A stretch of DNA of 64,000 bases, taken from positions 868,001-932,000 of the forward strand of contig NIVC01000073.1 of NCBI GenBank assembly GCA_002269645.1, written 5' to 3'. The notes under the pieces were generated by a model that worked only from the letters and a program-made list of their open reading frames with translations, did not search any database and had not been told where the DNA came from. The translations under genes and the position numbers were made by a program. Below, piece by piece: positions 1 to 64,000 of this stretch (within the stretch, counting starts at the first letter, position 1; every line of letters starts with the position of its first letter). Source of the DNA: Macrostomum lignano. Lineage: Eukaryota.

Positions 1-1
1 G

Positions 2-2284
2 CGGTACAACAAGCTGCCCACCTTCTTCGGCCCAAATGGACGGACCACCAGGCTGGACTGGATTTTGTGCCCAACGGCAATCAGGTCTCGACTGCGCAAA
101 GTGGTCAATATCCGCCCCAGCTGCGTGAGGTCCGACCATTCTCTGCTGGCCTGCGACATCGACTGCCGTTGGAAAAAGTTCAAGGCTGGCCCACCGCACC
201 CCCTCTGGGCAGATCTGAGAAACCCAGACACGCGCAGTGCGTTCATTGAAAAGCTGCAAAATGCTACTCCGGCCCTGAATGAATCGGCGGACGCCTTCAC
301 CAGAGCTGTTGAGAAAGCTGCCTCGACCCTACCAAAACGAACACCGCACCAGCCAAAAGCCGCCTGGGACTCCGACGAGGAGATCTCCATCGCTAGGCGC
401 GACGTGCAAAGAACAACCGCAGTCTTTGGCCAAGACAGTGAGCAGGCTGAAACAGCCCGGGCCCATCTTCGCGACACGCATGCCCGGAGGACCGAAGCCT
501 TTGTCCAGGAGGCTGTTGCTGAGATTCAACTAGCAACAGACAACTGCCGGCACACAGCGGCCTGGCGCGCCATCAACCGCCTGACTGGCAGGAAGCAGAG
601 GCCCAATGCCGCTGTAGGTGCTGAGTCTATACACCATCGCAAAGCCCTGCTGGCCACTCACTATCACAATGTGCTCAACGCCTCACCACCCTCTGCTGAT
701 TTGCTACCGATCGAAAACTTTACCCCGGCCGAGCCCTTGGCTTTTAACTCCGGCCCGCTGACTGCCTACGAGGTGAACCGAGTGCTCAGAACCATGCGCC
801 CCGACGCTGCCGCCGGAGTAGATGGCATTCCACCCAGGGTGCTCAAGCTGCCAGAGCTGACACAGGACATCACAGCTGTGCTCAACAAGCACTGTCCGCT
901 TGGAGGCAACCCAGGTGCTACTGCTGCTGACAGCTGGCGCACCTCTAAGATCGTCTCCATCCCCAAGAAGGGCGCATCCACCAGTCTGGACAACCAACGC
1001 GGCATCGCTCTGGAATGCACTCTGGCTAAGCTGCTCAATGCTATACTGCGTAATCGGCTGCTGCCTGGCCTCAACCAAATGATCCTGAGCCTCCAAAGTG
1101 GCTTCAGGCCCGGTCGCTCGACAACAGAGCAGATTGCAGCCCTTCGAGCAGTCGTCGAGGCCTGTAAAACTCACCAAAGAGCTGTGTCAATTGTCTTTGT
1201 GGACTTCCGCAAAGCTTTTGACTCAGTGTGCCGGCGCGCGATCGCGTGGCTGCTCGAACACTATGGCGTCCCCCCGGCTCTTATCGTTGCAGTGATGGAC
1301 CTCTACAACAACAGCAAAGCCTTTGTCCAAACCAGCGATGGCCCAACTGAGGACTTCTGCACCAGCTCTGGAGTCCTCCAAGGTGACACGTTGGCTCCAC
1401 TGCTCTTCATCCTTGTCGTCGACTACGTGCTGCGCCGAAGCCTCACAGAGGAGGACAGCTACCTGCTGGCGTCACGCCGGAGCTCCCGCTGCGGTGCTGC
1501 CCCTCTGCCCGCCCTCGCATACGCCGACGACATCGCCCTGCTGTGCCGCAGTCCGACTGCCGCCCAGAGAGCGCTCTCGAGACTCTATGAGGAGAGCGCC
1601 CGAGTCGGACTGCAAATCAACGCACGCAAGACGGAAGTGCTGCACGTGGGCACCGATGCAGCACCAATCCTGACCCTACCAGATGGACAAGTCATTTCAG
1701 CCTGCAGAGACTTCCGGTACCTGGGCTCCTTCGTGATGAGCCCTGACTCCATCATCGCCGACCGGAGGTCACAGGCCTGGCGCGCGGCTCATCTCCTCAG
1801 GGAGGTCTTCAGCTCAGCTGCCAACGACGACCTGAAGATGCGCCTGTTCCGCGCTGCCGTAGAGCCAATCTTCCTGTACGGACTGGAGGCAGTGCCAATG
1901 ACCGACTCGAGGTCCCGAGCCCTGGACGCTGCCTACCGATCGCTGCTGCGGTTCGCCCTTGGCATCCATTACCCAGAGCGGCTGCCAACGGACCAGCTGA
2001 TGGCGAGAGCCCGTGTGCCTCAGCTCAGTGCCACTCTCCAGCGGCGCCGGCTAATGCTCGTCGGCCACTGCCTCCGCAGCTACGGCAGAGGGGAGCAAAA
2101 CCCGCTGGCGCTAACCTTGCTACATCAGCCAACCGAGCGTCTCCGACGGGGCCAAGGCCGGACCGCCACGCTGACCGCCACGCTTGAGTCTGACCTTCAA
2201 GCCATTAACCTGACCCCACAATCTGCCACAAACTGTCCTTCTCGTCTCTTCTGCGAGCGCGTGCGCGCAAGACGCCCACCATAA
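2..2284 (+). mobile_element. Non-LTR retrotransposon ORF (end of AP-endonuclease + reverse transcriptase + C-terminal domain), RTE/RTEX-like; 5' end outside window
   Basis: Frame is open from base 2 (RYNKLPTFFGPNGRTTRLDWIL...SDHSLL = APE C-terminal motifs). RT motifs IPKKG, QSGFRPGRST, FVDFRKAFDSV, GVLQGDTLAPLLF, LAYADDIALL, FRYLGS follow, then LYGLEA...RRRLMLVGHCLR, typical of RTE-like elements. No stop until TAA 2282-2284. Confidence 0.93.
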
Positions 2285-3780
2285 TATCTTTGCGTCCTTA
2301 TATATATAAGGGCTATATATCTTTTAGGCTTGGACTATATATAAAAGCTATTCTGGACACATTATAAATTAAGTAGCTACAACTTGTTCTTCGAAACAAT
2401 CACATTCATGCTTTATAGACTGAAAGTACAAAAAAATTAAAAATTACAAAGGCATTCATGTAGCTTAGGAATTCAACTTTCCAAGACCTCAACATTTGTA
2501 GCATCACAAAGAAACGCAATTTTAGGTTAGTAAAAACGTTGTTTACTAGTGATTACTCATTTTCTACTTCATGACCTTTATATTAAGCTTCCTTTAATTT
2601 TTTTTCGTTTATCTTCCATAGGCCAGGTGGCCAGCTGGGTATTATAGGTCTATATTTTATAATAACATTAAATAAACACATTTTTAGATTTTCAAGCTTC
2701 TTAGTTAAAAAAGATACTTTATTGACGACAAGAGAAAAGAGCAATAAAACTCTATTTAGAGATTTTTTACCAAAAATAAATGATGATCTACACAACTTAA
2801 TTTCATTCTAAACTTAAACTGTAGATTGTCAATAAAAATGTTTAAATCCGCCTTGCTTTACTAGATGTGAATTATTTTTGAAAAGTTCTAATATGCTCTG
2901 GGGTTTATAGAACAAGTATAAATAAATGGTTTCAAGAAAGAAAAATATTAATTCGATGCTTTTTTGAGAAACAGACAACCAGTTTATAATTAACTGTGTA
3001 CATATAAAGCATTCATCGGGCTTGCATTAAAACATGCGATTTAATATGTATGTATAGCCAGCTAAATATTAAGGACATATAATTCGGCTTCTTTTGAATT
3101 CTGTTAAAAGAAATGTCAAAATATTTAGTGCCCATTGAACCCTTTTTTGAAGACAGAAACGTATAAAACAAACTGACAATTATTTTTAGCTCGTAGTTTC
3201 TTTTCTGATATAGCGTGGTTGAAAAGTAAATGAGATCGTAGATACGAAATCAAACTTTTGCGATGAAAACTATTGTTTGAATGCTTTTTTGCAGCATATT
3301 TTTTACTGTTGGATTATAATTTGTTAAATTATAACTAGCTTTAAATAGAACAACCCCCTAATTGTTCGTGTTTCATTTTTTTGCTTTTTTTGTTTAAATG
3401 TGCTAGTAATTGATTATTTTCGTTCCGGCATTGCTCATTATTGATTTACGGAAGCTGAGGACAGCATATCTAACACAGAGAAATTTATTCCATTTGTCTC
3501 ATTCTTCCTGTCTTTCTTTTCTCGTTCGTCTCCCTATATATGATATAAATTATGCGAGCTCAACTTTATTTCTGTGTACATTCTGTGTCCAAACTGGGAA
3601 GCTCAACTTTCCTAGTTTATACCAAACACAATTTGGAATAAATAAGAAAATTGGTATAATTTGCGCAATACTAATAGTAGAATTAGAACAAAGCCTAAAT
3701 TATTTATTCTTTAGACAGATTCACAAAAATGAAGTACACAAATGCGAGCGAATACTACGAGTTTTAACTATATAATAAGT

Positions 3781-5570
3781 TGTGACGAATTTAGATCGAT
3801 TATTTATGATAATGAACGATGTCGTTGCGTCATGCTGATCGAGTTTATATATTTAAATTAATTCACATTGATAATAATCTACTCTTAATATTATCGATAG
3901 CAACGAGCGTAGCATAGTAGTATTGCAATGAAACGGTGTGAAGGAAGGAGAACGAGAGAGGGAGCAAGCGCGTGTAAAATACATGTAGATTCGAATAAAT
4001 TTTATATACATGTACTGCGAGATGTTTCTTTGAATTATATACGGTATAACAAACAATACGTTAACGCTAAAAAGGAAAGTAAACTTTAAGTCTAATTTAG
4101 AATACTATGCTGTACGAGACGAGATAAGAAAAGAAAGGTGAAATAAAGAAAGCGACATCGTCACACTCGCCTCCTTCCAGAAAGAGGTTAGCTACACTAC
4201 TTACAAGTAGAAGGGTGTGCGCATACTAATTATCGAAAGAATATCGAACGTCCTAGAGCGAAAATATAGTTTTCTTTAAAAAGCATATTGTTGAGTGTAC
4301 GTCTCGTAAATAGAAAAATTTCAGAACAAAACGTCAAATTGAAGATTGTACGCTCAGCTAGTAGGGCAAACAACGATTAATAAGCGAATCAATATTAGTA
4401 AACAGTTTTTATATTAAAATGCGTGCACAACTTATTAGGTGACGGCAACTACAAAATAACTAAGAATAGTACAAAATTCTTAGTGAAAGCAGTCTGTACA
4501 GAAGGTAATTGGAGTTATAAGAAACGCAGGTGAAAATCGCAGCGTTCAGAAAACGATAATTACCAGTACGTCAGACTTCGACGCGCGTAAATAAAATGTA
4601 TGCGGCCATATGTACATGGACAATATACATGTAAAATAACAACTTATCTGCACTTGACAGTAAAAAACTAACAGCTTAAGCTGACTACCACACTGGCATA
4701 GCAGGTAGCGCGATTCAGGCTGCGATTCAGGGCGCGCAAACACCTAGCGAGACTGGGTAGGGTACGTGATGACTCAGTGATAGACAGCGCACGCCTGTGG
4801 TGCCATAGTTGAAGGCCGTAATCAGGACACGTACTCAGGACACGTAATCAGGACACGTACTCAGGACACGTACTCAGGACACGTACTCAGGACACGTACT
4901 CAGGATACGTAATCAGGACACGTACTCAGGACACGTACTCAGGACACGTAATCAGGACACGTACTCAGGACACGTACTCAGGACACGTACTCAGGACACG
5001 TACTCAAGACACGTACTCTACGTACTCAGGACACGTACTCAGGATACGTAATCAGGACACGTACTCAGGACACGTACTCAGGATACGTAATCAGGACACG
5101 TACTCAAGACACGTACTCTACGTACTCAGGACAAGTGCAGCGGTGGATCACTACTGCTTCCTCTCACAGTGATCTGGGACTCGGAATTGCAGAGTCGACC
5201 TAAGTCGGTTTGATCGGTGGGACCTCCAGAAATTGTGTCGAATTTAGATCGATTGTGCTGAGAGTTTATTTCAATCAATTCACAATGATAATAATCTACT
5301 ATACTCTTAATATGATAGAAAGCAACGAGCGTAGCGTAGTAGTATGGCAATGAGACGGTGTGAGGGAAGGAGAGCGAGAGGGAGCGAGCGCACGTAAAAT
5401 AGATTCGAATACATTTTATATACTGCTGGATATTTCTATGAATTATACGGAATAACAAAAAATACGCTAACGCTAAAAAGGAAAGTAAATTATAAGTGTA
5501 ATTTCGAATGCTATGCTGTACGAGACGAGATAAGAAAGAAAGGTGAAATAAAGAAAGTGACATCGTCACA
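3781..5570 (-). mobile_element. Non-autonomous LTR element (TRIM-like): LTRs 3781-4165 and 5234-5570, PBS(tRNA-Gln), PPT, no coding capacity
   Basis: Two diverged direct repeats bounded by TGTG(A/T)CGA...TCGTCACA (TG..CA with short inverted ends). 5214-5228 (+) TCGGTGGGACCTCCA matches the 3' end of eukaryotic tRNA-Gln. 4166-4178 reads GGAAGGAGGCGAG on the minus strand and abuts the 3' LTR. Confidence 0.8.
4822..5131. repeat. 13-bp tandem repeat (CAGGACACGTACT)n inside the LTR element
   Basis: Directly visible, a little over 20 copies with minor variants. Confidence 0.95.
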
Positions 5571-6216
5571 GAGTAAACAAAGCTAAAAAAACCTCCAATT
5601 ATAGTTCGTATGTCCGCCGGAAGGACAACTTACGAATAATGAATCTCAAATTAACAAATAAATGCTGCTTCTGGCATGTACATTTGCTAGCTAATTCTAA
5701 CATCTGAATTCTTATGGTGTCTATATATATCTTTAGCTTCTGAGCATATTTAGATTTTTGTTTAAATAATCCAGTCATAGGCATACCTGTACGTGCAATA
5801 GAAGAACATAGTTCAAGATCTATTCTTTCTATGCGTGCGCATGTAGTGACATACTATATGCAGCGCACAGTTTAACCTCATTTTTATGACACAATACTGA
5901 AAGAGAAAGCATTCCCATAGATCCAAAATGACCCCCTGGGTTAAAAGACCTATCTACTATAGTAGCCATCGAGGAAGCTGCACTGAACTTTGATGACCTG
6001 ATTGGACCCTTGACCAGGAACCAATAAAACCCCAGCTTTAGCTTCCTATATAGTCCTTCAATTCAGATCCCTTCATTTTATATACTCCTTGCTTAGAGCG
6101 GAAAAGATTTTATGAGTTTTTAGTTTATCTTTGTTTATCTATTTAAAGCCTAAAAACTTTCTATTGAATCTGATACAACAGTAATATAGCATTACTGTTT
6201 AGGCTTTATAGTAGTC

Positions 6217-9200
6217 ATGAACTGGTTCACTATACTGCGGGCAGTTCTGGTTCGAATACTGTTTGCCACTCACGGCATTGTGACGATCACCTACCTTTAC
6301 CGGCAATCCAGAAAGCCTGAGTACTGGTATTTGGCCTCGTCCGTTGTCGGATTAGTGCTTGAGTCCATTGTCACCTTTGGAGCTAACCAGGGCCGCGAGT
6401 GGAAATGGTGAGGCATGATTTAACCGCATTTGTGCATGTGTCTTATGGAGGTCACTAGCTTGTGTCCTATGGGGGTCACTAGCTTGTGTCCTGTGGAGGT
6501 CACTAGCTTGTGTCCTATGGAGGTCACTAGCTTGTGTCCTATGGAGGTCACTAGCTTGTGTCCTATGGAGGTCACTAGCTTGTGTCCTATGGAGTCACTT
6601 TGTGTCCTATGGAGGTCACTGGCTTGTGTCCTATGGAGTCACTTTGTGTCCTATGGAGGTCACTAGCTTGTGTCCTATGGAGGTCACTAGCTTGTGTCCT
6701 ATGGAGGTCACTAGCTTGTGTCCTATGGAGTCACTTTGTGTCCTATGGAGGTCACTGGCTTGTGTCCTATGGAGTCACTTTGTGTCCTATGGAGGTCACT
6801 AGCTTGTGTCCTATGGAGGTCACTAGCTTGTGTCCTATGGAGGTCACTAGCTTGTGTCCTATGGAGTCACTTTGTGTCCTATGGAGGTCACTAGCTTGTG
6901 TCCTATGGAGTCACTTTGTGTCCTATGGAGGTCACTGGCTTGTGTCCTATGGAGGTCACTAGCTTGTGTCCTATGGAATCACTTTGTGTCCCATGGAGTC
7001 ACCCTGAGTCCTATTAGGTGTCGCACCTTGTGTCCTATGGAGTCACTTTGTGTCCTAGGAAGTCACTTTGTGTCCTATGGAGTCACTTTGTGTCCTAGGA
7101 AGTCACCTTTAGTCCTATTAGGTTTCGCACTTTGTGTCCTAGGAAGTCACTTTGTGTCCTATGGAGTCACCTTGTCTCCTATGTAGTCACAACTTGTGCA
7201 CTATAGAGTTACTGTGTAAACATACTAATGCATAAAGTATGTTTATGATACACAATATAAGTGTTCTTTCTCATAAGCATTATCATAAATATCTTTTACA
7301 TGGCTCAGAGCATCTGTGCATCCCGGCAGCCAGCTATAACTGGTTCTCTAGTCAACGAAAGAAATAGTTACCCTTAACAATGCAGCCTAGCAATCAGTTT
7401 CTCCACAACTTCCTGCCTCAGTGACAGACTCCTCAACCGGGCTAAGGGTTATTCAACGCTGCAGTCATGGACACCCGGAACCAGGCATCTGGATTGGGCT
7501 GACTCTTCACACACTGAATCCTCATTTTCAAGATCCATCAAGGCTGGCTTCAGTGGTGAAGGCGTCTGACTCTCACGCCACGACCCAGCTGAAATTGGGT
7601 GCATGAAAATTGGCCCGGGGAGGGGGGTTGTCGTGCGATTCACAGCCATGAGGACCGAGCCCTATGGCTCAGAGACTGTACATCCTGACGAACGATTTTA
7701 TGAGTGCGTGCCTGTGTACAGTATTGGCGCGCTTGCATGTGCTCAGGGTCTGCGGAAGTTGGAGTTGCCTTGGAGTTGGTTGAGGGACGATGTAGCAGAG
7801 AAGGCGTTGCGCTAGGGCGACCAAAAATGTCCTGAAAGTATTCAGTTAATTTTTTATGCAAAGGGGTTGTAGTCTAGTGGTTAGAGCATCGGAATCCCGA
7901 CTGAAAGGTCGGAGGTTCGATTCCCGACCCACTCGGAACAATTTGTGTCCTTGAGCAAGACACTTATAGCTGTAAAATCGGTGCCAGCATTAGCGACCCC
8001 CCAGTCCTTGGACTGAACAGCCGTACGCAGCCTTCAGATGCGCCGCGCAATAGCTGCGGCTGAGCTGTCGGTTGCACATCTGGCCCAATTGGGTCAGGTG
8101 TAAGCAATTTTTATTCTAATTATTATGAATTATGCATCACAACTATTTGACATCTAGTTTAAAAACTTCTTAGAGAATCTAAAATAATATTTTAAACGCG
8201 ATAATGAGACTTGAATTTTACTAAACCGCAGAAAACCGTCCTTATAAATTGTGTCCAGAAGCGAGGAGTTGTCCTTGACTGCAATGCCGAGAGATGCAAT
8301 GCCAATGCTGAGCTCTGCACTTCCTGACCTGTCTCACCGGCTTGCTGAGCGGTCTGGTAGTTCTTAGCTGCACAAAGAAATTGAAAGTGGAGTAGTGGAG
8401 TCTTTCTACCCCCATCCTTAGTCGGAAGAAAATGTGTGGTTGGGTCTGCGCTGGAAGGTGAATAAGATTGATACGAGCGTAGACTGCGATCATCCTGGAT
8501 TCCGGGATTTGATCCCGTTGTGAATGGTTAACTCAGTGTTAGTTCTATACAAATTTTTCATCTAAATCAGATTCCTCCTGCAGTTCAATATATGGCCTGC
8601 AGTCGGCCTCGAGCCACCATTCCCAAAAATGTTAAAGCGTTAAATTACAGCTTAGGTAGACAGTCACAATTTGTCATTTTTACTGGATTAGCGAGATGCT
8701 GAGTTTTTTTAACACTCAACTGCCAATACCTTCTCAGTTAGCAAGTTTTGTCAGAGATTACTAAAATTTCCATCATGGTATAATATTTTAAAGAAATTCT
8801 TCACACTACCAGAGCGATATTCAGTGTGTGGTGCGGGAAATGGCTCCCCTTTTGACCATAGACTACTTAGTTCTTGAATGAGTCACACTACCAGAGCGAT
8901 ATTCAGTGTGTGGTGCAGGAAATGCCCCCCCCCCTTTGACCATAGACTATTTAGTTCTTGAATGAGTCACACTACCAGAGCGATATTCAGTGTGTGGTGC
9001 GGGAAATGGCTCCCCTTTTGACCATAGACTACTTAGTTCTTGAATGAGTCACACTACCAGAGCGATATTCAGTGTGTGGTGCGGGAAATGGCTCCCCTTT
9101 TGACCATAGACTATTTAGTTCTTGAATGAGTCACACTACCAGAGCGATATTCAGTGTGTGGTGCGGGAAATGGCTCCCCTTTTGACCATAGACTACTTAG

Positions 9201-11347
9201 TTCTTGAATGAGTCACACTACCAGAGCGATATTCAGTGTGTGGTGCGGGAAATGGCTCCCCTTTTGACCATAGACTATTTAGTTCTTGAATGAGTCACAC
9301 TACCAGAGCGATATTCAGTGTGTGGTGCGGGAAATGGCTCCCCTTTTGACCATAGACTATTTACATGTAGTTCTTGAATGAGTCACACTACCAGAGCGAT
9401 ATTCAGTGTGTGGTGCAGGAAATGCCCCCCCCTTTGACCATAGACTATTTAGTTCTTGAATGAGTCACACTACCAGAGCCATATTCAGTGTGTGGTGCAG
9501 GAAATGCCCCCCCCCTTTGACCATAGACTATTTAGTTCTTGAATGAGTCACACTACCAGAGCGATATTCAGTGTGTGGTGCGGGAAATGGCTCCCCTTTT
9601 GACCATAGACTATTTACATGTAGTTCTTGAATGAGTCACACTACCAGAGCGATATTCAGTGTGTGGTGCAGGAAATGCCCCCCCCCTTTGACCATAGACT
9701 ATTTAGTTCTTGAATGAGTCACACTACCAGAGCCATATTCAGTGTGTGGTGCAGGAAATGCCCCCCCCCTTTGACCATAGACTATTTAGTTCTTGAATGA
9801 GTCACACTACCAGAGCGATATTCAGTGTGTGGTGCGGGAAATGGCTCCCCTTTTGACCATAGACTATTTAGTTCTTGAATGAGTCACACTACCAGAGCGA
9901 TATTCAGTGTGTGGTGCGGGAAATGGCTCCCCTTTTGACCATAGACTACTTAGTTCTTGAATGAGTCACACTACCAGAGCGATATTCAGTGTGTGGTGCG
10001 GGAAATGGCTCCCCTTTTGACCATAGACTATTTAGTTCTTGAATGAGTCACACTACCAGAGCGATATTCAGTGTGTGGTGCGGGAAATGGCTCCCCTTTT
10101 GACCATAGACTATTTACATGTAGTTCTTGAATGAGTCACACTACCAGAGCGATATTCAGTGTGTGGTGCAGGAAATGCCCCCCCCCTTTGACCATAGACT
10201 ATTTAGTTCTTGAATGAGTCACACTACCAGAGCCATATTCAGTGTGTGGTGCAGGAAATGCCCCCCCCCTTTGACCATAGACTATTTAGTTCTTGAATGA
10301 GTCACACTACCAGAGCGATATTCAGTGTGTGGTGCGGGAAATGGCTCCCCTTTTGACCATAGACTATTTAGTTCTTGAATGAGTCACACTACCAGAGCGA
10401 TATTCAGTGTGTGGTGCGGGAAATGGCTCCCCTTTTGACCATAGACTACTTAGTTCTTGAATGAGTCACACTACCAGAGCGATATTCAGTGTGTGGTGCG
10501 GGAAATGGCTCCCCTTTTGACCATAGACTATTTAGTTCTTGAATGAGTCACACTACCAGAGCGATATTCAGTGTGTGGTGCGGGAAATGGCTCCCCTTTT
10601 GACCATAGACTATTTACATGTAGTTCTTGAATGAGTCACACTACCAGAGCGATATTCAGTGTGTGGTGCAGGAAATGCCCCCCCCTTTGACCATAGACTA
10701 TTTAGTTCTTGAATGAGTCACACTACCAGAGCGATATTCAGTGTGTGGTGCAGGAAATGCCCCCCCCTTTGACCATAGACTATTTAGTTCTTGAATGAGT
10801 CACACTACCAGAGCGATATTCAGTGTGTGGTGCGGGAAATGGCTCCCCTTTTGACCATAGACTATTTAGTTCTTGAATGAGTCACACTACCAGAGCGATA
10901 TTCAGTGTGTGGTGCAGGAAATGCCCCCCCCCTTTGACCATAGACTATTTAGTTCTTGAATGAGTCACACTACCAGAGCGATATTCAGTGTGTGGTGCAG
11001 GAAATGCCCCCCCCCTTTGACCATAGACTATTTAGTTCTTGAATGAGTCACACTACCAGAGCGATATTCAGTGTGTGGTGCAGGAAATGCCCCCCCCCTT
11101 TGACCATAGACTATTTAGTTCTTGAATGAGTCTGGTTGAGTCCAGACTAGACTATATGCTCTAGCTGTCCGGAGAATGGAAAGCCTATGAAAGATACAGA
11201 AAGCAAGTGTCAGAGGGTGCTACGCTGGGGTCTGTGGCGAACCCCGAACGTAAATAATTGCCTGCATCATCATCATCATAATCCGGCCAATCGGATTTTT
11301 CATATTTCCCCTTAGCAACTGGCAAAGGGTCCACTGAGGCATCCGTT

Positions 11348-11387
<40 letters not shown>

Positions 11388-11950
11388 CTCCTTTTTTCTT
11401 TTGCCCACACTTTAATTGCTAGCTAAAGTCTATATAGGAGCCTGTACGGGTATTTTTTGATTCAACGGAGAGGTACAACAAGCACGCAACTGCTGATGAG
11501 TATAGATGATCTCTCCCGGCTTTATATTTATGAATATATATATACCTAACATTATTATGAATAGCTATACTGCTGCTATAAAAATACTTTGGCTAGAGAT
11601 AGTTGGGGAGCAGATATGGATAAGCAATGCGGAGATCTTTGGGTTCATATTTATATATATATATGTAGCCTTATAGTTTATATAGCATTGAGTACTTGGG
11701 CCTCATAAATCTTAACTGGTAAAAATAACTCCAAACTGTCTCAGGCATCGCCGGTGCTCGCAAATTCTCATTTTTTCTTTCGAATCATTCATATACAGCT
11801 CAGAGCCGTCTCACTGCTTGCCTCTGTGGGGAATAGCTGCAGGAAATTCTCCCATTTACCGGTGGGGAGTCCCACATGAGGCTCTGTTATCATGGAGGCT
11901 GGGCCGCCCGAAAACACCGATAATTGGAATATTGAGAGAGAGAGAAAGAG

Positions 11951-12027
<77 letters not shown>

Positions 12028-15000
12028 TAGTATCGGAATTAGAGTATATCTAGTCTAGACCAAGTGCCTCCGTTCTGGGGCTTTTTATCGAAATTGATCA
12101 TTACAAAAAAATTTGCAAGACAATTCTCTAAAATGGCACTTTTTGGGACTCGAACCAATGAAAATGGCGTTAAGATACGAGCTTCCTGGCACTCGGACAG
12201 TAAAAAAGACACTTCTAATTCGAAGAATGGCATTCAGACATCCAAAATTGCACCAAGAAATCAAAAACACCATCAAAACATCAGAAACGACGTCCAGACA
12301 TGCAAAATGCATCCAGACATACAAAATGGCATCCAGACATACAAAATGGCATCCAGACATACAAAATGGCATCCAGACATACAAAATGTCATCGAGGCAT
12401 CCAAAACGTCATTCAAACATACAAAATGGCATCCAGACATACAAAATGGCATCCAGACATACAAAATGGAATTCAGACATACAAAATGGCATCCAGACAT
12501 ACAAAATGGCATCCAGACATACAAAATGGCATCCAGACATACAAAATGGCATCGAGGCATCCAAAACGTCATTCAAACATACAAAATGGCATTCAGACAT
12601 ACAAAATGGCATTCAGACATACAAAATGGCATCCAGACATACAAAATGGCATCCAGACATACAAAATGGCATCCAGACATCCAAAATGGCATCCAGACAT
12701 CCAAAATGGCTACAAAAAGACCAAAAATGGTACCACAACACTAAAAATATTCACCCCAGACACCAACAAAAATGGCAATAAGCCGCTCAAAATGGCATCC
12801 AGACACCCACAATGTCATCTCCAATCACGCATAGCAGCGGAAGCAGTCGGTAGTCCTCAATCTACATGGAAATATTTGCTTTAATTTCCGTCAATTTCGG
12901 CGAGTGCCACAGAGGATTAAGCCACTGAAAGAGAGAGGGGGGATGAAGAGAGAGAATAAATAAATTTTTACGACCCGACCAGGAGAGCTCAAACTGGCAG
13001 GGCTGTAAATCCGAGGGCTGTAAAATTCTCAGCGGCCCCGCGGGGGCATCCATCAAGCTCAGCTCAGCTCAGCGTCTGGTAATCTTGATCGACTCAAACC
13101 ATGGCATATGGGAGGGAATTTCTCCCCGCCTTCTATGGCGCTAATTCTTTGCCTATCAACGGAACAAGCAGCTAGTGCTCACTTTGAGCACAGAATCCCT
13201 CTCCCCTCTCTACTCTCCCGTCTCCCCTCTCTACTCTCCCGACTCCCTTCTCTACTCTCCCGACTCCCTTCTCTACTATCCCGTCTCCCCTCTCTACTCT
13301 CCCGTCTCCCCTCTCTACTCTCCCGTCTCCCCTCTCTACTCTCCCGACTCCCTTCTCTACTCTCCCGTCTCCCCTCTCTACTCTCCCGTCTCCCCTCTCT
13401 ACTCTCCCGTCTCCCCTCTCTACTCTCCCGACTCCCTTCTCTACTCTCCCGTCTCCCCTCTCTACTCTCCCGTCTCCCCTCTCTACTCTCCCGTCTCCCC
13501 TCTCTACTCTCCCGTCTCCCCTCTCTACTCTCCCGTCTCCCCTCTCTACTCTCCCGTCTCCCCTCTCTACTCTCCCGTCTCCCCTCTCTACTCTCCCGTC
13601 TCCCCTCTCTACTCTCCCGTCTCCCCTCTCTACTCTCCCGTCTCCCCTCTCTACTCTCCCGTCTCCCCTCTCTACTCTCCCGTCTCCCCTCTCTACTCTC
13701 CCGTCTCCCCTCTCTACTCTCCCGTCTCCCCTCTCTACTCTCCCGTCTCCCCTCTCTACTCTCCCGCTCTCTCTACTCTTTCGTCTCCCCTCTCTACTCT
13801 CCTCCCTCTACCCTCCCGTCTCCTCTCTCTACTCTCCCTTCTCTCCTCTCTACTCTTCCGCCTCCCTCTTTATCCTCCCCTATCTACTCTCCCCTACATA
13901 CCATCTACTCACTCTACTCTTTTCATTATTCTTCTATTTCATCTTTTCATTATTCTTCTATCTCCCCTCGCTCCTTAATCATCTCAATGTCAATCTGACA
14001 TTTACTTCTTTCGCTGAAAATGTTCAACCTTTGTATCATGAAGAAATTTGCCCTTCAAATAATAAGCTAATGTAATTAATTCCCCAGGACGATATGCAGT
14101 TTGCTAGTACATTTGCTAGACATTTCTCCCAAAAATTACTTTGCTCAGTAAGCCCCACCGGAGGCCAGACCGTATGCCATATTTCCAACAAAAGTTCAAC
14201 AGTCTAAGAGAAAAAAGACAGACTGACTTTGAGCAAACACAGACCGGCACTGAGCCAGGGCCTCCAGAATTCCTCTTGCTCGGATATTTGATCCCGCCTC
14301 ATCGAGATCGGTTTGAGGCCTCATCTGCCTAGCAACTGAGATGCCGAAGTGAATAAGGATAACCGGATAGGGGCAGGAGTTCGAGTTCTGACTCCATCTC
14401 TGAGTTTTTCTTTTCTACTCAAATCCAAAAACCTGTTCTCGGAATTAACAGAATTCCGCTAAATAATTGCGATTTTGTGTTCTTAAAATATGATGATTTT
14501 TTGTCCCTAAAATATGATTTTGTGTCCCTCAAGTATGATGATTTTGTGTCGCTAAAATATGATGATTTTGTGTCGCTAAAATATGATGATTTTGTGTCGC
14601 TAAAATATGATGATTTTGTGTCACTAAAATATGATGATTTTGTGTCGCTAAAATATGATGATTTTGTGTCGCTAAAATATGATGATTTTGTGTCGCTAAA
14701 ATATGATGATTTTGTGTCGCTAAAATATGATGATTTTGTGTCGCTAAAATATGATGATTTTGTGTCACTAAAATATGATTTTGTGTTGCTAAAATATGAT
14801 GATTTTGTGTCGCTAAAATATGATGATTTTGTGTCACTAAAATATGATTTTGTGTTCCTAAAATATGATGATTTTGTGTCACTAAAATATGATTTTGTGT
14901 TGCTAAAATATAATGATTTTGTGTCGCTAAAACATGATGATTTTGTGTCACTAAAATATGATGATTTGTGTCACTAAAATATGATGATTTTGTGTCGCTA

Positions 15001-18000
15001 AAATATGATGATTTTGTGTCACTAAAATATGATTTTGTGTTGCTAAAATATGATGATTTTGTGTCGCTAAAATATGATGATTTTGTGTCACTAAAATATG
15101 ATTTTGTGTTGCTAAAATATGATGATTTTGTGTCACTAAAATATGATTTTGTGTTCCTAAAATATGATGATTTTGTGTCACTAAAATATGATTTTGTGTT
15201 GCTAAAATATAATGATTTTGTGTCGCTAAAACATGATGATTTTGTGTCACTAAAATATGATGATTTTGTGTCACTAAAAAATAATGATTTTGTGTCGCTA
15301 AAATATGATGATTTTGTGTCGCTAAAATATGATGATTTTGTGTTTCTAAAATATGATTTTTGTTCAACCGTGTTCTATAATAGCACAGAAAACCATCTTA
15401 TTTTGTGGTCACAAAGACATTATTTCAGCAATAGCGATATTTTTTGCGCAAAGTTACCCTTAACTAACAAGACAAAAGTCAAAGTGAAATCAAGATGTTA
15501 AAGGTGCATATGGGTCCAGTTGTAAAAGTACAACTGGCATTTGCCCGCCGACTGCCTATTTGAATAATTGCGCTCGTGCAAAGAAATAATTGCGCATCGC
15601 ATCAAGACTTTTGCTTTGTTGCAGAAAACTGAAGCATACTTTGTGCATACAGTGTAGTGTAAGGTTAGGATGGGGTGTACTCTAATTATAGACAGGCTTA
15701 CATGTAAGCACAGAATGGTGTCTGCGGTACGAGATGCGACTCTTCCATTAGGGAGATGCGACTCTTCCATTAGAGAGATGCGACTCTTCCATTAGGGAGA
15801 TGCGACTCTTCCATTAGGGAGATGCGACTCTTCCATTAGGGAGATGCGACTCTTCCATTAGGGAGATGCGACTCTTCCATTAGGGAAAGGCGACTCTTCC
15901 AATAGGGAGGTGTGACTCTTCCGTTAGAGAGATGCGACTCTTCCATTAGGGAGATGCGACTCTTCCATTAGGGAGATGCGACTCTTCCATTAGGGAAAGG
16001 CGACTCTTCCATTAGGGAGGTGCGACTCTTCCATTAGGGAGGTGTGACTCTTCCATTAGGGAGGTGCGACTCTTCCATTAGGGAGGTGTGACTCTTCCAT
16101 TAGGGAGCTGTGACTCTTCCATTAGGGAAAGGCGACTCTTCCGTTAGAGAGATGCGACTCTTCCATTAGGGAGGTGCGACTCTTCCATTAGGGAGGTGTG
16201 ACTCTTCCATTAGGGAGGTGTGACTCTTCCATTAGGGAGCTGTGACTCTTCCATTAGGGAAAGGCGACTCTTCCATTAGAGAGATGCGACTCTTCCATTA
16301 GGGAGATGCGACTCTTCCATTAGAGAGATGCGACTCTTCCATTAGAGAGATGCGACTCTTCCATTAGGGAGATGCGACTCTTCCATTAGGGAGATGCGAC
16401 TCTTCCATTAGGGAAAGGCGACTCTTCCATTAGGGAGGTGCGACTCTTCCATTAGGGAGGTGTGACTCTTCCATTAGGGAGGTGCGACTCTTCCATTAGG
16501 GAGGTGTGACTCTTCCATTAGGGAGCTGTGACTCTTCCATTAGGGAAAGGCGACTCTTCCGTTAGAGAGATGCGACTCTTCCATTAGGGAGGTGCGACTC
16601 TTCCATTAGGGAGGTGTGACTCTTCCATTAGGGAGGTGCGACTCTTCCATTAGGGAGGTGTGACTCTTCCATTAGGGAGCTGTGACTCTTCCATTAGGGA
16701 AAGGCGACTCTTCCGTTAGAGAGATGCGACTCTTCCATTAGGGAGGTGTGACTCTTCCATTAGGGAGGTGTGACTCTTCCATTAGGGAAAGGCGACTCTT
16801 CCGTTAGGGAGATGCGACTCTTCCATTAGGGAGGTGCGACTCTTCCATTAGGGAGGTGTGACTCTTCCATTAGGGAGGTGTGACTCTTCCATTAGGGAGG
16901 TGTGACTCTTCCATTAGGGAGGTGTGACTCTTCCATTAGGGAAAGGCGACTCTTCCGTTAGGGAGATGCGACTCTTCCATTAGGGAGGTGCGACTCTTCC
17001 ATTAGGGAGGTGTGACTCTTCCATTAGGGAGGTGTGCCTCTTCCACTAGAGAGATGCTACTCTTCCATTAGGGAAAGGCGACTCTTCCGTTAGAGAGATG
17101 CGACTCTTCCATTAGGGAGGTGTGACTCTTCCATTAGGGAGGTGCGACTCTTCCATTAGGGAGCTGTGACTCTTCCATTAGGGAGCTGTGACTCTTCCAT
17201 TAGGGAAAGGCGACTCTTCCGTTAGAGAGATGCGACTCTTCCATTAGGGAGGTGTGACTCTTCCATTAGGGAGGTGTGACTCTTCCATTAGGGAGGTGCG
17301 ACTCTTCCATTAGGGAGGTGTGACTCTTCCATTAGGGAGGTGCGACTCTACCAGATAGAAGATCATTTTATTACGTAGATGATTTCATAAGGCAAAATAA
17401 GGGCAGAAAATTTTACTGTCCATAAATTTAACTAATCTAACAAACTACTCAAACAAATGCCAGGTTCTGCCCGTCTGCCTTTTTCTACCTGTTAGTAACT
17501 GTGCCAAGCACCTGGTTTCTGGAACTGGAACTGGTGGACTGGCGAATCGAATGCAACAGGACCTACAGAACTACAGACGATATTCTGTGCAAGCATAGGC
17601 GAACTGCTAATGCTTCTGCGGTGCACGTGAGTGGTCAAAAATTGTGTCCGGCTGGGGTGTCAGGTTAGGGTGTCCGGATGATGTGTCCGGATAGGGTGTC
17701 CGGATAGGGTGCCCGGATAGGGTGCCCGGATAATGTGTCTGGATAGGATGTACGGACAGGGTGTCGGCCGGATAGGGTGTCCGGTTAGGATGTACGGACA
17801 GGGTGTCGGCCGGATAGGGTGTCCGGTTAGGATGTACGGACAGGGTTTCGGCCGGATAGGGTGTCCGGTTAGGATGTACGGACAGGGTGTCGGCCGGATA
17901 GGGTGCCCGGATAGGGTGTCCGGATAGGGTGTCCGGATAGGGTGTCCGGATAGGGTGTCCGGATAGGCTGCCTTGATACGGGTGTGACCAGAGCATCATG

Positions 18001-19156
18001 CTGCAGTGTCAGATTCATCTGTCAATCAAAAAGTACATAGGGAACTTTCATACGCTTGACTCCGCATCGCCTCCGTCCACTCTTCGTCCAGACCAAAGGA
18101 GACGAGGACTTTCTGGGCGCTCAGGACTTTGAGCAGACAATACGGACTCTCGAACAGCTGCTTCTGCTTCTACTCATCCTGGGTCGCTGGATGCTGCCCA
18201 AGGGCAAGCTGACTCACGACCAGCTGTCCCAGCTGCTTCTCGTGTACATCGGCACCGCGGCCGATATTGTCGAATTCTTCGAAGCCTTCAAAGAGGAAGT
18301 GGTGAAACGCGATCGAAACCTCATCATGTTGATCCTGACCATCTGGACCTGGTCACTGCTCCAGTTCGTCCTGGTCATAACGGCGCAACGAGCGCGCAAA
18401 GACCACTCAGGCCTGGTGGCGTCTCGACGTCGCACTGTGAAGGAGTCGCCAGCAACGCCAGAAGAAGAGGAGAATTACTGCTACTGCTCACCCGAGGTGT
18501 TCGGCATCGTGATCTCCATGCTGCTGCAGGACCTGCCCTACCTAGTGACGCGGCTGTACATGATGTTCAACTACAACACCACCAGTTACACAAACGTGTT
18601 CTTCACCCTCAAGAACAGTCTGGTCTGCAGCCTGCTGACTTACCGTCTCGTGGTCATCTACTCGGAGCGATTCCGTCGAATTAGAAAGGCCAGACGGGCC
18701 AAGCTGGCCGGAGCGCCCAGAGTCGTGCTGCTGGATGACGGGTCCGAGGCTGGCGGCGACGTGCCCGAATCGATGCTCACCAGCGCTGGGGGAGATGCTC
18801 GAGGCTCCTTGCTGGCTAACGGCGGCGGAGCGTCCAGCAGCACCAGCTTGGTGAAGCTGTGCCTCCGGGAGAAGTACCAGCAGCCCGGGCCTCCTGAGCC
18901 GGAGCAGATGCCCCGCTCGGTGTCCCTGCGGCTGGTGCGCTACTCATCCTCGGATAGGAACCCCCCGACGGCGATGTCGCATTCGGCCACGACGGCTGGC
19001 CTGTCGCCGACACCGCCGCGGTTGACTCTGCGGCCGCACCGGCCGGCTTCGTTAGCGGGCGACGAATCAGTGCCGGTGGACAGCGGCAAACTGGCTGGTG
19101 GCGGAGGCAGGCCAGCGATTGCAGCTGCGCACCTGGCTGACAAGTCCGACTTGTAG
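6217..19156 (+). CDS. TMEM26: Transmembrane protein 26 homologue; exons 6217-6407, 17464-17626, 18092-19156 (472 aa)
   Basis: Exon 1 [20 protein letters not shown]...YWYLA...GREWK(W); exon 2 (W)[22 protein letters not shown]; exon 3 [43 protein letters not shown], the TMEM26 hallmark. GT/AG sites have matching phases (TG|gtgagg...ccag|G; CAC|gtgagt...ccag|ACC). Confidence 0.9.
6436..7190. repeat. 24/20-bp minisatellite (TGTGTCCTATGGAGGTCACTAGCT / TGTGTCCTATGGAGTCACTT), TMEM26 intron 1
   Basis: Visible array starting about 30 nt after the donor. Confidence 0.95.
7862..8130 (+). mobile_element. tRNA-derived SINE, copy 1
   Basis: Pol III A box (TAGTCTAGTGG) and B box (GGTTCGATTCCC), followed by GTGTCCTTGAGCAAGACACTT, a body and an AT-rich tail. 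Homologous to 53388-53684 on the opposite strand. Confidence 0.8.
8802..11132. repeat. ~83-bp satellite (~28 copies) with a 500-bp higher-order repeat
   Basis: Unit AGTCACACTACCAGAGCGATATTCAGTGTGTGGTGC(G/A)GGAAATG...TTTGACCATAGACTA(C/T)TTAGTTCTTGAATG. Variant copies at 9615, 10115 and 10615 recur every 500 bp. Confidence 0.95.
11355..11383. repeat. (CT)n microsatellite
   Basis: Direct. Confidence 0.95.
11933..12023. repeat. (GA)n microsatellite
   Basis: Direct. Confidence 0.95.
12220..12810. repeat. 20-bp minisatellite (ACAAAATGGCATCCAGACAT)n
   Basis: Direct, with degenerate flanks. Confidence 0.93.
13195..13800. repeat. 21-bp polypyrimidine minisatellite (CTCCCCTCTCTACTCTCCCGT)n
   Basis: Direct. 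Confidence 0.95.
14472..15362. repeat. 24/21-bp minisatellite (TTTGTGTCGCTAAAATATGATGAT)n
   Basis: Direct. Confidence 0.95.
15733..17350. repeat. 22-bp minisatellite (GCGACTCTTCCATTAGGGAGAT/GT)n, ~73 copies
   Basis: Direct; ends about 110 nt before TMEM26 exon 2. Confidence 0.95.
17643..17970. repeat. 13-bp-based minisatellite (CCGGATAGGGTGT) with ~39-bp composite units, TMEM26 intron 2
   Basis: Direct. Confidence 0.9.
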
Positions 19157-19385: not shown

Positions 19386-21504
19386 CCGAAAATGGAAACT
19401 GTCTTTAGTAAAACAAAGTACATTTACAATGCTGAAACTCAATGCTGCAGCTCTCTAATGGTGTCGTCAATTGTTTTGTACCAGTATGTGCGTTGTACCT
19501 CGCAGTTTTTCTTATTGGTCAGAGACTTTTTAACTGAACTAAATATTGCATTAACAGAATTCTAGTTGATGTCTAGGAGACACTGTCGTTATCACTTTTC
19601 TACTTTTGTACTAGCTTATACCTAATCATATATCCCTAGTATATTCCATTGAATTGCTTTTGTTGTCAATTGTCAAAGACATTCGGTGTCCGGTCTGGAA
19701 CGCCCTGGTCGATCAGCTACGTTGCTATTGTCAGTCAAGTTTATAGTAAATCCAACCAACTTTGAGAAATGCCATTTGGCAGCAGTAGATTCGGTCTTGC
19801 CCATAGACATAGACATAGACGGGAAAAGGCAAGCAACTTGATACTGCCTATGTCTATGGCCAACAGCCCATTCACTGATTTCTGCTTAAAAGTACATTTA
19901 TCTAATAGATTTTTATCGATGTCACAATTTTTGAAAAGAATTACTGCAATTTTAAACAAATTATATCTGTACAAGTAAATGCACAATTTACCGTGTCTTT
20001 TCACATTTCAATAAATTTGTTATTATTGTATCAAATGCGAAATCAATTATTGTACCAGTAGTAGTCATGGACAGCGCTGTACTCGAAATCGTGATAAAAT
20101 GTTGCTGTTGGTTGCGGTTTTCGATGCTAAAAATTCATTTTTTTCAATTTTATTTAAAATATTAACTCCCGGCTTCCCTAATAGTGCATTGCGAGTTCCG
20201 AATATACTATTATACTACAAGTATCTATCTGAATTGCCATTTATCAAACTATATTGTAATGGAACATGATTATTTGTTATGCATCAATCAGTGTATTGTT
20301 TTGTCTTAGTTATAGTTAGCCGCATGTACCTGAATCAGCCTCTCTCAGTCCTTCATTCCGCTATCTAACTTGTGGCGTCTTGTAGCAAGCCACGCCAAAG
20401 TGTGCAGTAGGATGCATACAAGTGGCTTCAGATTTGGAATAAATTCTTTTTGCTCTCTGGCTTCGGCTACAGGATTTAAACCCGTAGAAACTACAAGGCA
20501 TAGCATCAAGATTGTGTATTATATATGCAGTATTGGTAGTAGCTCGATGTAGGTAATATCGGTATATCCGTCTGCCACTGTAAATAAACATCAGTAGGTG
20601 AAAAGTACTTTATTATTAACTACTGTGTAGCTAAAAAGATGGCATCACCAAGAAAGTAGCATAAAATTGCTACCACCTGTGGCGACTAACCGGTAGGTAT
20701 AGTAATTATTGGAAAAAATAATTTCCACAATATGCTACTGTTAAGTAACAAAAATAAGTAGTATAGCTTATGATTAAAAGGCTATACACGCTAAACAATA
20801 AATTGGTTGAAGGGTCAAAATTTTTCTACCTTACAAAAGTTCTTTAATTTAAGCATCATATTGAAATTTAAATTGAAGAAATATAAATAGAACAGACCCC
20901 GCATCTATGCTACTTTTAGTAGCTTACTAACTGCACTTGCAACCTGCTTTGCTTCCCAACCAGTTGATCTGATGGTCCATGACATAAACAGCAGTGGGCT
21001 TGAAAAAATTTAAAATTTTTCTTTAAATTTAGATTATATTGGTAAAAAGCTACTCAGTAAAGTAGGCAGTTAGTTTGCAAAACTAGAATTGTTAAGGTTT
21101 CTATAAATAGCAACATTTTTAGGAAGGTTAACAGCTTTGCTATGCTTCATTAAGACTCATTAAGAGATTTCTACTTGATAAAAATTCGAGTTTATTTAGT
21201 TTGAAACGAAAATTTGCGTTGTTTGGTCCAGAGCTGAAGGGTAAGCGTGATTGACGCTCGAGTCACGGGTCATGGTTGGGGCTTGTGTGCATAAAAAATG
21301 GACCAGGTTGGTTTTCCTGCGACTGCGAGGCACAGTGTACATGCCTGACCGATTAGAAAGTCAGGGCCACTGTTCACCCTGCATGAGCGAGTGTACAGCA
21401 TTGGCGCGCTTGTACTCATGTGCTCAGGAGTCTGTGGATTGGGCAGAATTGCCTCTCGGCTGTGGGACGATTATCATTTATACGATTTTGAGTCATCCCG
21501 TCAG

Positions 21505-22323
21505 TCAGATTCGCACCAACTTCATCCAGTCGGGCTTCTCAAACTCCAGCTCTGTCTCCGAGTCGCTGAACTCCGTCACCCGGCACCGCATGAGCCCGCC
21601 GTGGTACAGGAGGCTGCGACTGAACGGCCTCAGAGCAGCCAGCAGGGTGCAGTCGTCCAGGCTTGGCACGGGCCGATCCGCCTCCCAGAAGCAGTAGCGC
21701 TCGGGCTTGTTGAAGCCAGTCGTTGGCACTTCACGCCGGGCTGCCCATCGCCAACGCGATTTCGTCGGGCAGCCGCCGTCATCGGCTGCTGGCGGCTGCA
21801 GTTCGCAGACAAATCCGCTGAGCTCTTCGCACTGTTTGTCCATCAGCCCCACACCGCGGGTGCCGTTTGAGAGCATCAAACAGTCCTGCTGGCCGTTGAA
21901 GTTGTTCGGATCAAAAGAGTACCAGATCGAGTCGCTCTCGGGCATTTGGCCTCGTCCGTTGACCAGCTGCCAGCCCAGCTTTGAGTTGACTCTCTCCTCA
22001 GCCAGGTCGCTGACTCCAATCCAGAACTGGGCGCCCGGCTCAGCTACCAGAGAGCTCAGATTGCCGACCAGCGACCAGCTCGTGACGAGTTCGGCTCCCA
22101 GAGCGGCGCATCGATGGTTGGCCTCGCACCAGCTCACCTTGGCTGTCAGGTTGATCAGTACGCAGTGGCTTCGGATTCTTGAAAAGCCAGGTGGGCAGCT
22201 TGCTCCAAGCGCATCCGATACAGCTTGTACTGTTCCCAGTGTATCGAGTAAATTTGCGATAGCCCCCTGTAGAAGAACAGCTGACAACGCAACGATGGCA
22301 GTAGACTGGCAGAGCAGCCGCAT
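21505..22323 (-). CDS. Secreted C-type lectin domain protein with a C-terminal Cys-containing (PAN/apple-like) module, 272 aa, single exon
   Basis: Hydrophobic signal peptide. CTLD pattern CPPGFSRIRSHCVL..VSWCEANHRCAALGAELV..FWIGVSD..W..NG..DPNNFNGQQDCL..DKQCEELSGFVCE. Confidence 0.88.
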   Translation of the reverse strand: MRLLCQSTAIVALSAVLLQGAIANLLDTLGTVQAVSDALGASCPPGFSRIRSHCVLINLTAKVSWCEANHRCAALGAELVTSWSLVGNLSSLVAEPGAQFWIGVSDLAEERVNSKLGWQLVNGRGQMPESDSIWYSFDPNNFNGQQDCLMLSNGTRGVGLMDKQCEELSGFVCELQPPAADDGGCPTKSRWRWAARREVPTTGFNKPERYCFWEADRPVPSLDDCTLLAALRPFSRSLLYHGGLMRCRVTEFSDSETELEFEKPDWMKLVRI

Positions 22324-27469: not shown

Positions 27470-27790
27470 TCACAACTGGCGAGAGGCATTACTGCCCACT
27501 CCGCAGACTCCCCTGAGCAGGCACACTAGCGCTCGGATACGTACGCGGTCATACGCACAGGAACACTCACACAGGAGTGTACAGCGGCCCTAACTTTATT
27601 TATCGTTAGGCATGTACACTTCACTGTGCCTTGGGGGTTGGTTCTCAAGCTGGGCGTTAATTGCACGAGCAGAGCCAAGCCGAGATTCCAATTCAGCCCC
27701 AAATTAATGTGACTGCACTTGGAATCGAGCCTGGGCCGCTGGCACATCACATTGACCACATGGACCATGCACTGGGCTACGGCAGCCTGT
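27470..27790. repeat. Dispersed repeat, copy A (related copies at 46790-46925 and, inverted, 52455-52740)
   Basis: Shared blocks such as CACTCACACAGGAGTGTA(C/A)AGCGG(C/T)CCTAACTTTAT and GCACGAGCAGAGCCAAGCCGAGATTCCAATT. Confidence 0.85.
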
Positions 27791-28374
27791 CAGTTGTACC
27801 TCTCTCACCTGCCACGGGTCGATCACACTGATTCAGGGGTTTTTATTTGAGCCCTGACTTTCTAATCGTCAGGCATGTAGACTTAAATTTTTCAGAGTAT
27901 TTTTTGCATCGATGCATTCAGACTACTACTACTCTATAGTAAGTAATAAGTATGATCGTGTCCGTGTGCTGTTTTACACAACTAGACTATATAACAGCCT
28001 GTCACTTTCACAATGTTTATTTTCAAATTCACAGATCGAATGAAACAAATCGAATTTGGACCTCTCCAGTTAATTAAAAAGGAGGTACATAAGTTTATGC
28101 ATAAAAAGAAGAGTAGTAATTAATAATTATTTTTGAATGACTACAATTGCTTCAGCTCAATTTAAGTAGATTTTAATTAAATAAGTAATTTCGAAAACAC
28201 AGATAACTAAAAACAGACACTAAAAACTGTTAAAAATGACAATGGAAAAGTATAAGAAAAGTATAAACAGTTCAACGAAAATTGATAAAAATAAACGAAC
28301 AGACAGAAACTTAAAGACCAACGAAAAATTCCTAGTAGGCAGAGCTCAAACACTACTGTCTTGAGTAGCTTCTG

Positions 28375-31300: not shown

Positions 31301-32114
31301 TCTGCCGCTCTACCCAATCTGCCGCTCTACCCAATATGCCACTCTACCCAATCTGCTACTCTACCCAATATGCCACTCTACCCCATCTGTCACTCTACCT
31401 TATCTGACTCTACCTTATCTGTCACTCTACCTTATCTGTCACTCTACCTTATCTGACTCTACCTTATCTGTCACTCTACCCCATCTGCCACTCTACCTTA
31501 TCTGGTACTCTACCCAATCTGCCACTCTACCCCATCTGCCACTCTACCCAATCTGCCACTCTACCCAATCTGCCACTCTACCCAATCTGCCGCTCTACCC
31601 AATCTGCCGCTCTACCCAATATGCCACTCTACCCAATCTGCTACTCTACCCAATATGCCACTCTACCCCATCTGTCACTCTACCTTATCTGACTCTACCT
31701 TATCTGTCACTCTACCTTATCTGTCACTCTACCTTATCTGACTCTACCTTATCTGTCACTCTACCCCATCTGCCACTCTACCTTATCTGGTACTCTACCC
31801 AATCTGCCACTCTACCCCATCTGCCACTCTACCCAATCTGCCACTCTACCCAATCTGCCACTCTACCCAATCTGCCGCTCTACCCAATCTGCCGCTCTAC
31901 CCAATCTGCCACTCTACTCCATCTGTCACTCTACCTTATCTGTCACTCTACCTTATCTGTCGCTCTACCTTATCTGTCACTCTACTTTATCTGTCACTCT
32001 ACTTTATCTGTCACTCTACCTTATCTGTCACTCTACCTTATCTGTCACTCTACCTTATCTGTCACTCTACCCAATCTGCCACTCTACTCAATCCGCCACT
32101 CCACCCCATCAGCC
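28375..32114. repeat. 17-bp satellite (CTCTACCCAATCTGCCA)n, ~3.7 kb, with recurring variant blocks
   Basis: Direct; the many long ORFs here are repeat translations. Confidence 0.97.
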
Positions 32115-44558: not shown

Positions 44559-44562
44559 CTGC

Positions 44563-48200: not shown

Positions 48201-48273
48201 TAGGATCCTCTATAGTTTTCGGAAAGGCAAGTTTATCTACTGAACCTATTTACGCACACAATGCAGCAATATA

Positions 48274-50798: not shown

Positions 50799-50937
50799 CT
50801 GAAATTGAAATATTAATTAGAAATATTAATTGGGCTAATGGCACACAATAGAAACTCTGGACCGGTATTAAATTAGTATTATTACATTACTGTTATTATA
50901 TTCTCGACCATAAATATTATCCATATGTAATCAAGTT

Positions 50938-52881: not shown

Positions 52882-63827
<10,946 letters not shown>

Positions 63828-64000
63828 TTACAAAAATTACTAGCGAAATGAGAGAACAGACTCCATAAAATGTGTCTTAATATTTTACTGACCTTTCAAA
63901 GCTACCTACAGACTTACAGGTCAACACTACAGCCTTACAGACTAAAGCTAAAGCCTTACAGATCAAAGCTACAGACACTTACAGATCAAAGCTACACACA

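Follow-up and report, generated by a model that had tools for sequence, protein, structure and literature searches.

Excision of Tc1/mariner transposons leaves 3′ overhangs of 2–3 nt, and the resulting footprint consists of the overhang bases framed by a duplication of TA (PMC3878927; PMC7827188). Here, we analyzed a window, that is, the whole stretch of 64,000 nt at NIVC01000073.1:868001-932000, in the Mlig_3_7 assembly (GCA_002269645.1) of the neopolyploid flatworm Macrostomum lignano. At three independent sites with unrelated flanks in this window, the octamer TACATGTA stood where a related sequence had a single TA. The 6-bp difference was identical at all three, the short form being TA and the long form TA-CATG-TA. 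CA and TG are the canonical tips of the Tc1 family.

The sites resemble the footprints of Tc1 and Tc3 in Caenorhabditis elegans (2-nt stagger, CA...TG termini) in that the target is TA, the TA is kept on both sides, and the added CA and TG correspond to the element tips (PMC3878927). Unlike in the C. elegans case, no element with such tips was present in this sequence, and all putative scars were complete TACATGTA. The footprints of Tc1 and Tc3 are usually a mix of partial forms. The net gain of 6 bp is also that of Minos, a Tc1-family element of Drosophila hydei, and comprises the TA duplication plus four terminal bases; this footprint leaves the reading frame intact and is distinctive enough for hit-and-run events to be recognized by it (PMC3386967). 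An element of the form CATG...CATG would have self-complementary overhangs, unlike Minos. The bases that Minos leaves are those of its own tips, CGAG/CTCG, and not CATG.

Sleeping Beauty, Frog Prince and mariner are comparable in superfamily, TA target and end-joining repair (PMC7827188; PMC3878927), but they cut with a 3-nt stagger and canonically leave TAC(A/T)GTA, which adds 5 bp. That scar was not enriched in the window, where TACAGTA occurred twice and TACTGTA not at all, which indicated that a 3-nt stagger does not fit. In M. lignano itself, the Tc1/mariner family MS-Mali has been described, with a TA duplication, a length of 1334 bp and 35 copies, six of them intact; it belongs to the DD37E/Mosquito family, encodes a DD37E transposase of 348 amino acids and ends in CTGGG...CCCAG (PMC10379824 supplement). 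DNA transposons make up 3.05% of the genome (PMC5730564 supplement). A transposase of the superfamily is thus present in the lineage according to the literature, not according to the window.

Six-base differences at three TA sites

The first two sites lay in a pair of direct repeats of 390 bp, copy 1 at 3777–4165 and copy 2 at 5230–5570. Their local alignment had 305 matches, 31 mismatches and nine indels, with 90.8% identity outside the gaps; one of the indels was a 30-bp block of copy 1 (3801–3830) that was missing from copy 2. At site 1 (3980–3987), copy 1 read AAAA-TACATGTA-GATTCG and copy 2 AAAA-TA-GATTCG, with its single TA at ~5400–5401. At site 2 (4007–4014), the two copies read TATA-TACATGTA-CTG and TATA-TA-CTG, the latter with its TA at ~5421–5422. 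Copy 1 carried both long alleles and copy 2 both short ones, and the alignment showed both as clean differences, as a sequence-only reading of this DNA had claimed.

The same reading had named the two copies LTR1 and LTR2, as a pair of long terminal repeats. This identification was not supported: no target duplication matched on the two sides, and gag/pol domains were missing between the copies. The flanks differed (GCGTCA versus GAGTAA under one parse). Neither a primer-binding site nor a polypurine tract was visible at the repeat pair, and the 1.06-kb interval between the copies held a 13-bp minisatellite and no domain matches.

The third site belonged to a satellite at 8801–11132, detected by Tandem Repeats Finder within the span of a Tmem26-like gene. 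It comprised 28 monomers of an 82-bp unit, not 83 bp as first read, arranged in a 500-bp higher-order repeat (period scores of 96% for 500 bp and 94% for 82 bp). The monomer sizes were 82–84 bp, and the eight types followed one another in the order ABACACDEFDGFCACDGFCACDEECGGH. With its head-to-tail monomers and its recurring block CACDGF, the array qualified as a higher-order repeat. Type D, of 88 bp, was present in four identical copies at 9295–9382, 9548–9635, 10048–10135 and 10548–10635, with the octamer at 9362–9369, 9615–9622, 10115–10122 and 10615–10622, respectively. It equaled type C, the commonest monomer, plus ACATGT, and there was no other difference between the two; the contrast of TA and TACATGTA between sister monomers was thereby upheld.

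Type D was confined to the core of the higher-order repeat. The insert was missing from the seven other monomer types, which made up 24 of the 28 monomers, and from both array edges, and parsimony favors insertion in the satellite. Since type D recurred inside the amplified block CACDGF, the four satellite octamers were counted as one event, in agreement with the proposal that a single scar was amplified by the satellite.

Three independent sites had also been proposed to share the same 6 bp at a TA, and the alignments bore this out, the flanks being different in each case. At none of the three was the added CATG templated by either flank. That CATG recurred between duplicated TAs in three unrelated contexts pointed to one shared source outside these sequences.

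Local excess of the octamer

TACATGTA occurred nine times in the window, at 3980, 4007, 4626, 9362, 9615, 10115, 10615, 15699 and 48885, so that all the octamers listed in the sequence-only reading were recovered. Dinucleotide shuffles gave an expectation of 0.74, and none of 100 shuffles reached nine. Tandem arrays accounted for 43% of the window. Outside them (36.4 kb), five octamers were found against 0.25–0.75 expected under Markov orders 1–4, or 7–20 times the expectation. The hexamer ACATGT was not itself enriched there (eight observed, 5–8 expected), and the excess lay in its flanks: five of these eight hexamers were framed by T...A, where 5% would be expected (binomial P = 1.5e-5). One-mismatch relatives of the octamer were also at expectation (22 versus ~22), which indicated that there was no halo of decayed copies. 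The raw counts of the partial forms TACATA and TATGTA in the window were eight each.

Except for the gain of TACATG, every length variant in 35 measured arrays was either a homopolymer change or the tandem duplication of local sequence (TTCCC, GGTGGG, ATG). This gain was the sole insertion untemplated by its surroundings, which favors an excision scar. Three of the five non-array octamers fell within 650 bp of one another, in a segment rich in AT and in TA. The chance of this is ~0.003–0.01 by a rough estimate. Such clustering would be expected if an element hopped locally or preferred DNA that is TA-rich and bendable. A full-text literature search with TACATGTA and "footprint" returned nothing relevant.

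The octamers at 4626, 15699 and 48885 had been listed as further cases. Their positions stood, and a counterpart with TA alone was lacking, except in a weak form at 48885. The first of them (4626–4633), in AT-rich spacer DNA, was 600 bp away from sites 1 and 2, and no sister sequence was available for comparison. The second (15699–15706) was intronic, inside the 14-bp palindrome GCTTACATGTAAGC and 25 bp before a 22-bp array. The third (48885–48892) fell within the final, degenerate monomer of a 36-bp array and adjoined a splice donor of the minus-strand ankyrin/SOCS-box gene. Sister monomers of this array had TA at the aligned place, in a weak alignment, and the site might be regarded as a weak fourth case of TA versus TACATGTA. 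All three octamers may be scars of the same kind as the focal ones.

Probable excision scars and their alternatives

Probably, though far from certainly, a cut-and-paste transposon of the Tc1 family left the octamers at 3980 and 4007 and that of the satellite as fixed excision scars in the germline. This reading rests on the match of the signature and not on an identified element; that the change was an insertion and that a transposon was its agent are both inferred. The interpretation of TA-CA-TG-TA as a footprint of Tc1/Tc3 type was in agreement with the published overhangs and TA duplication (PMC3878927) and with the 6 bp of Minos (PMC3386967). Excision footprints of the Tc1 family are known as such; what is new is a fixed, repeated and satellite-amplified instance in a flatworm.

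In the proposed mechanism, the element would insert at TA and duplicate it. On excision, the transposase would cut the 3′ ends exactly at the element tips but the 5′ ends a few bases further in, so that each flank would retain TA plus the terminal bases of the element as a 3′ overhang, and the two flanks would be sealed by end joining. Two variants would both give TA-CATG-TA with a net gain of 6 bp: CA...TG ends with a 2-nt stagger and both overhangs retained, or CATG at both ends with a 4-nt stagger and self-complementary overhangs. The self-complementary CATG overhangs of the second variant would explain why the scars are uniform. One scar would have arisen in a type C monomer and then been copied four times with the six-monomer block CACDGF.

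Several points weighed against excision scars. Elements flanked by TA with CA...TG inverted ends, a check suggested in the sequence-only reading, were sought in the 64-kb window and none was found; the donor scans, one for pairs of TACA...TGTA whose inverted ends were 16 nt long and one for 13-nt inverted ends of any sequence flanked by TA, gave chance-level matches only. No transposase domain was detected by Pfam in the window's reading frames of ≥70 amino acids outside arrays. MS-Mali, the only documented Tc1/mariner family of M. lignano, agrees with the focal scars in superfamily, TA duplication and species, but its CTGGG ends would leave a different scar. Its predicted scars, TACTAGTA and TACT(G/C)AGTA, were absent or found once in the window, and with such termini it was rejected as the source. 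Footprints of the Tc1 family are usually heterogeneous, whereas all those found here were identical. Copy 1 of the direct repeat was longer at eight of the nine indels, a one-sided pattern that fits insertions in copy 1 or, equally, deletions in copy 2.

The homeologous copies of the locus, of which there were two besides the window (NIVC01000023.1 and NIVC01000660.1), counted on the same side. The fetched homeologous loci, three copies in all, corresponded to 14.2–54.6 kb of the window, and the focal sites (3.8–11.1 kb) were outside all of them. Over the ~40 kb compared in the three copies, there were zero TA/TACATGTA differences. The octamers at 15699 and 48885 were identical in all three copies, which indicated that they are old, and the compared loci showed no sign of activity since the genome duplication. 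No site had an occupied allele in the homeologous DNA, and neither a donor element nor a transposase was found in the window or its fetched homeologous copies. Neither the 390-bp repeat nor the 82-bp satellite had a further copy in this DNA, and so the polarity of the change was unrooted at all three focal sites.

Two of the homeologous loci were reached through PurL, whose hand-spliced model was an exact match to PAA91816.1, and these corresponded to 24–54.6 kb of the window only. The copies diverged at 1.1% of bases (~9 kb of unique aligned sequence per comparison), and the two comparisons contained 16 and 20 indels, none of these 36 being of the TACATG type. Segments of 135 bp (20097–20232) and 74 bp (20950–21021), the latter flanked by a CTTT direct repeat, were present or absent among homeologs; they looked like microhomology deletions, not TA/CA...TG events, and were rejected as mobile-element events. 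The homeolog on NIVC01000023.1 contained a foldback element of ~620 bp with inverted arms of ~260 bp (~1900–2540 of the fetched locus in minus-strand view), where the window had only 24 bp (51983–52006) that resembled both element tips. The window probably lost the interior of this hairpin-prone element by internal deletion, and the ~620-bp difference was likewise rejected as a TA/CA...TG event. The third copy had a similar extra length at this place.

A dispersed repeat with the core GTGTACATGCCTRACGATTAGAAAGTCAGGGCC was also considered as the CATG-tipped end of a TA-flanked element and was rejected. Core copies were located at 21338 and 52608 on the plus strand and at 27611, 27874 and 49406 on the minus strand (spans 21332–21368, 52607–52638, 27586–27618, 27850–27885 and 49383–49412). 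The sequence outside the TA was conserved for 60–130 bp in four of the five copies, and TACATG was therefore internal to the repeat. The repeat extended up to ~230 bp, contained a 6-bp stem (CCTGAC...GTCAGG) and was not a strong hairpin (folding z-scores from −2.5 to +0.3). One inverted pair bracketed 6.5 kb with lectin and Vav-like genes, and several copies were situated just upstream of genes in sense orientation. All the copies that fell inside the fetched homeologous locus, three in number, were present there too. Scans for tRNA genes and Rfam families found none.

The main rival to excision scars is that the short allele is derived, an ancestral TACATGTA having lost six bases by slippage or by microhomology-mediated joining between its two TAs. 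We consider this unlikely. TA...TA does provide a ready 2-bp microhomology for a 6-bp loss, the unrooted polarity at every focal site suits it as well, and the shorter copy 2 at eight of nine indels is what would be expected of a deletion-prone copy. It would, however, require at least three ancestral octamers, two of them 27 bp apart, at 7–20 times their chance frequency, and would leave that excess itself unexplained. In the satellite, one loss at the array root would be a single step, at the same cost as one insertion; against this, the insert is missing from 24 of the 28 monomers (all seven types other than D) and from either edge of the array, and type D is otherwise type C. In addition, all three homeologous copies retain the octamers at 15699 and 48885 despite a divergence of ~1.1%, with no loss of this kind.

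Alternatively, the insertions might be due not to a mobile Tc1-like element but to another process that breaks and repairs DNA specifically at TA, for example through a domesticated transposase, a nuclease leaving CATG ends or a fixed insertion of polymerase-theta type. The unusual uniformity of the scars, the lack of a donor element nearby in the window scans and the clustering of events in one AT-rich kilobase would all be consistent with it. Templated insertions, however, copy nearby sequence and none matched here, no repair pathway is known to us by which a fixed CATG would be added whatever the flanks, and known transposase chemistry explains the signature fully. This alternative was judged improbable.

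It seems more doubtful still that TACATGTA recurs because of its function, as a palindrome under selection that, for instance, binds a protein in promoters and introns. The octamers at 15699 and 48885 were conserved in three homeologous copies, but neutrality predicts as much at ~1.1% divergence. Both continue as TACATGTAAGC, one of them in the 14-bp palindrome; an AGC tail common to two of five octamers is nevertheless not significant (P ~0.16 by a rough estimate). The octamers at 3980, 4007 and 4626 were upstream of the first exon of the Tmem26-like gene (6190–6408), and the one-mismatch relatives were not enriched, as constraint predicts. Selection would still leave three same 6-bp indels at TA unexplained, one of them inside a satellite monomer. 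Finally, an artefact of assembly or polishing of the PacBio/Illumina/454 data is very improbable even in a genome that is hard to assemble, with 50% repeats and redundant contigs (PMC5730564), given that a 6-bp palindromic insertion is untypical of long-read error, that two octamers recurred in three separately assembled contigs and that the four type D monomers were in register within a regular higher-order repeat.

Gene content of the window and implications of the putative scars

Pfam scans placed the Tmem26-like gene at 6190–19156 on the plus strand, with exons at 6190–6408 and 18056–19156. The minus strand contained PurL (35074–44591, an eight-exon spliced model), the ankyrin/SOCS-box gene (48270–50818) and an IRE1-like gene (54990–64000). 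Nearly all introns of these four genes were filled by their own private minisatellite with a unit of 13–82 bp; the positions of the intronic arrays were kept in the three homeologous copies, and the copy number differed. The GenBank annotation leaves out transcripts and genes that overlap repeats (PMC5730564), which accounts for the Tmem26-like gene being unannotated. Homology searches with Tmem26, the reverse transcriptase of a long interspersed nuclear element (LINE) and a lectin placed no M. lignano protein on a contig. No recorded protein was matched by the Tmem26 exon or by an 83-amino-acid reading frame, and the top match in a representative-protein search with a PurL exon was on no contig.

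The start of PurL (44520–44535, minus strand) had no genomic ATG in the reading frame, and CTGCAG|GCCTTCTATCGG resembled an acceptor site; PAA91816.1 is partial and starts at RLYLSD. The start codon may be supplied by a trans-spliced leader that ends in ATG. A Vav-like gene (24708–26612, minus strand) was intronless, with a reading frame of 634 amino acids that contained CH, RhoGEF, C1 and SH2 domains and gave no SH3 match; its protein was identical in two homeologous copies, and the third was annotated as 401 amino acids and split. Two single-exon C-type lectin reading frames (21505–22323 and 32109–32834, both minus strand) were missing from the GenBank annotation, and a word-indexed homology search with the former gave no match at E ≤ 1e-8. 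The LINE reading frame (1–2284, plus strand, 60% G+C) was cut by the window start. Its relatives have an endonuclease and a reverse transcriptase, and the closest of those with contigs were only 64% identical and came from metagenome assemblies. A 17-bp array at 28392–32114 (~220 copies) displayed extreme strand asymmetry, with a GC skew of −0.64 to −0.71.

With regard to the octamer, a bolder proposal, which we hold to be unlikely, is that a TA-specific transposase, mobile or domesticated, with self-complementary CATG overhangs and error-free resealing has marked the whole genome with TACATGTA as an unusually uniform mutational signature. Its scars would be frequent enough to seed satellite variants and would serve as datable markers of array turnover, and the octamers at 3980, 4007 and 4626 would be the local hopping trail of one element. 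If there is no genome-wide excess of TACATGTA, the finding shrinks to a local curiosity. If the excision-scar reading is true, past transposon traffic would be measurable genome-wide by counting TACATGTA against a background model, and the scars would be a fossil record of cut-and-paste activity that is invisible to ordinary repeat annotation. The satellite case would provide a clean single-event marker for dating the amplification of the higher-order repeat. A Tc1-like family would once have been mobile in the germline of a flatworm that is a model for regeneration and transgenesis. Minos did not mediate integration in M. lignano (PMC5730564); for transgenesis in this species, one candidate tool would be a native element that targets TA and whose tidy 6-bp scar does not shift the reading frame.

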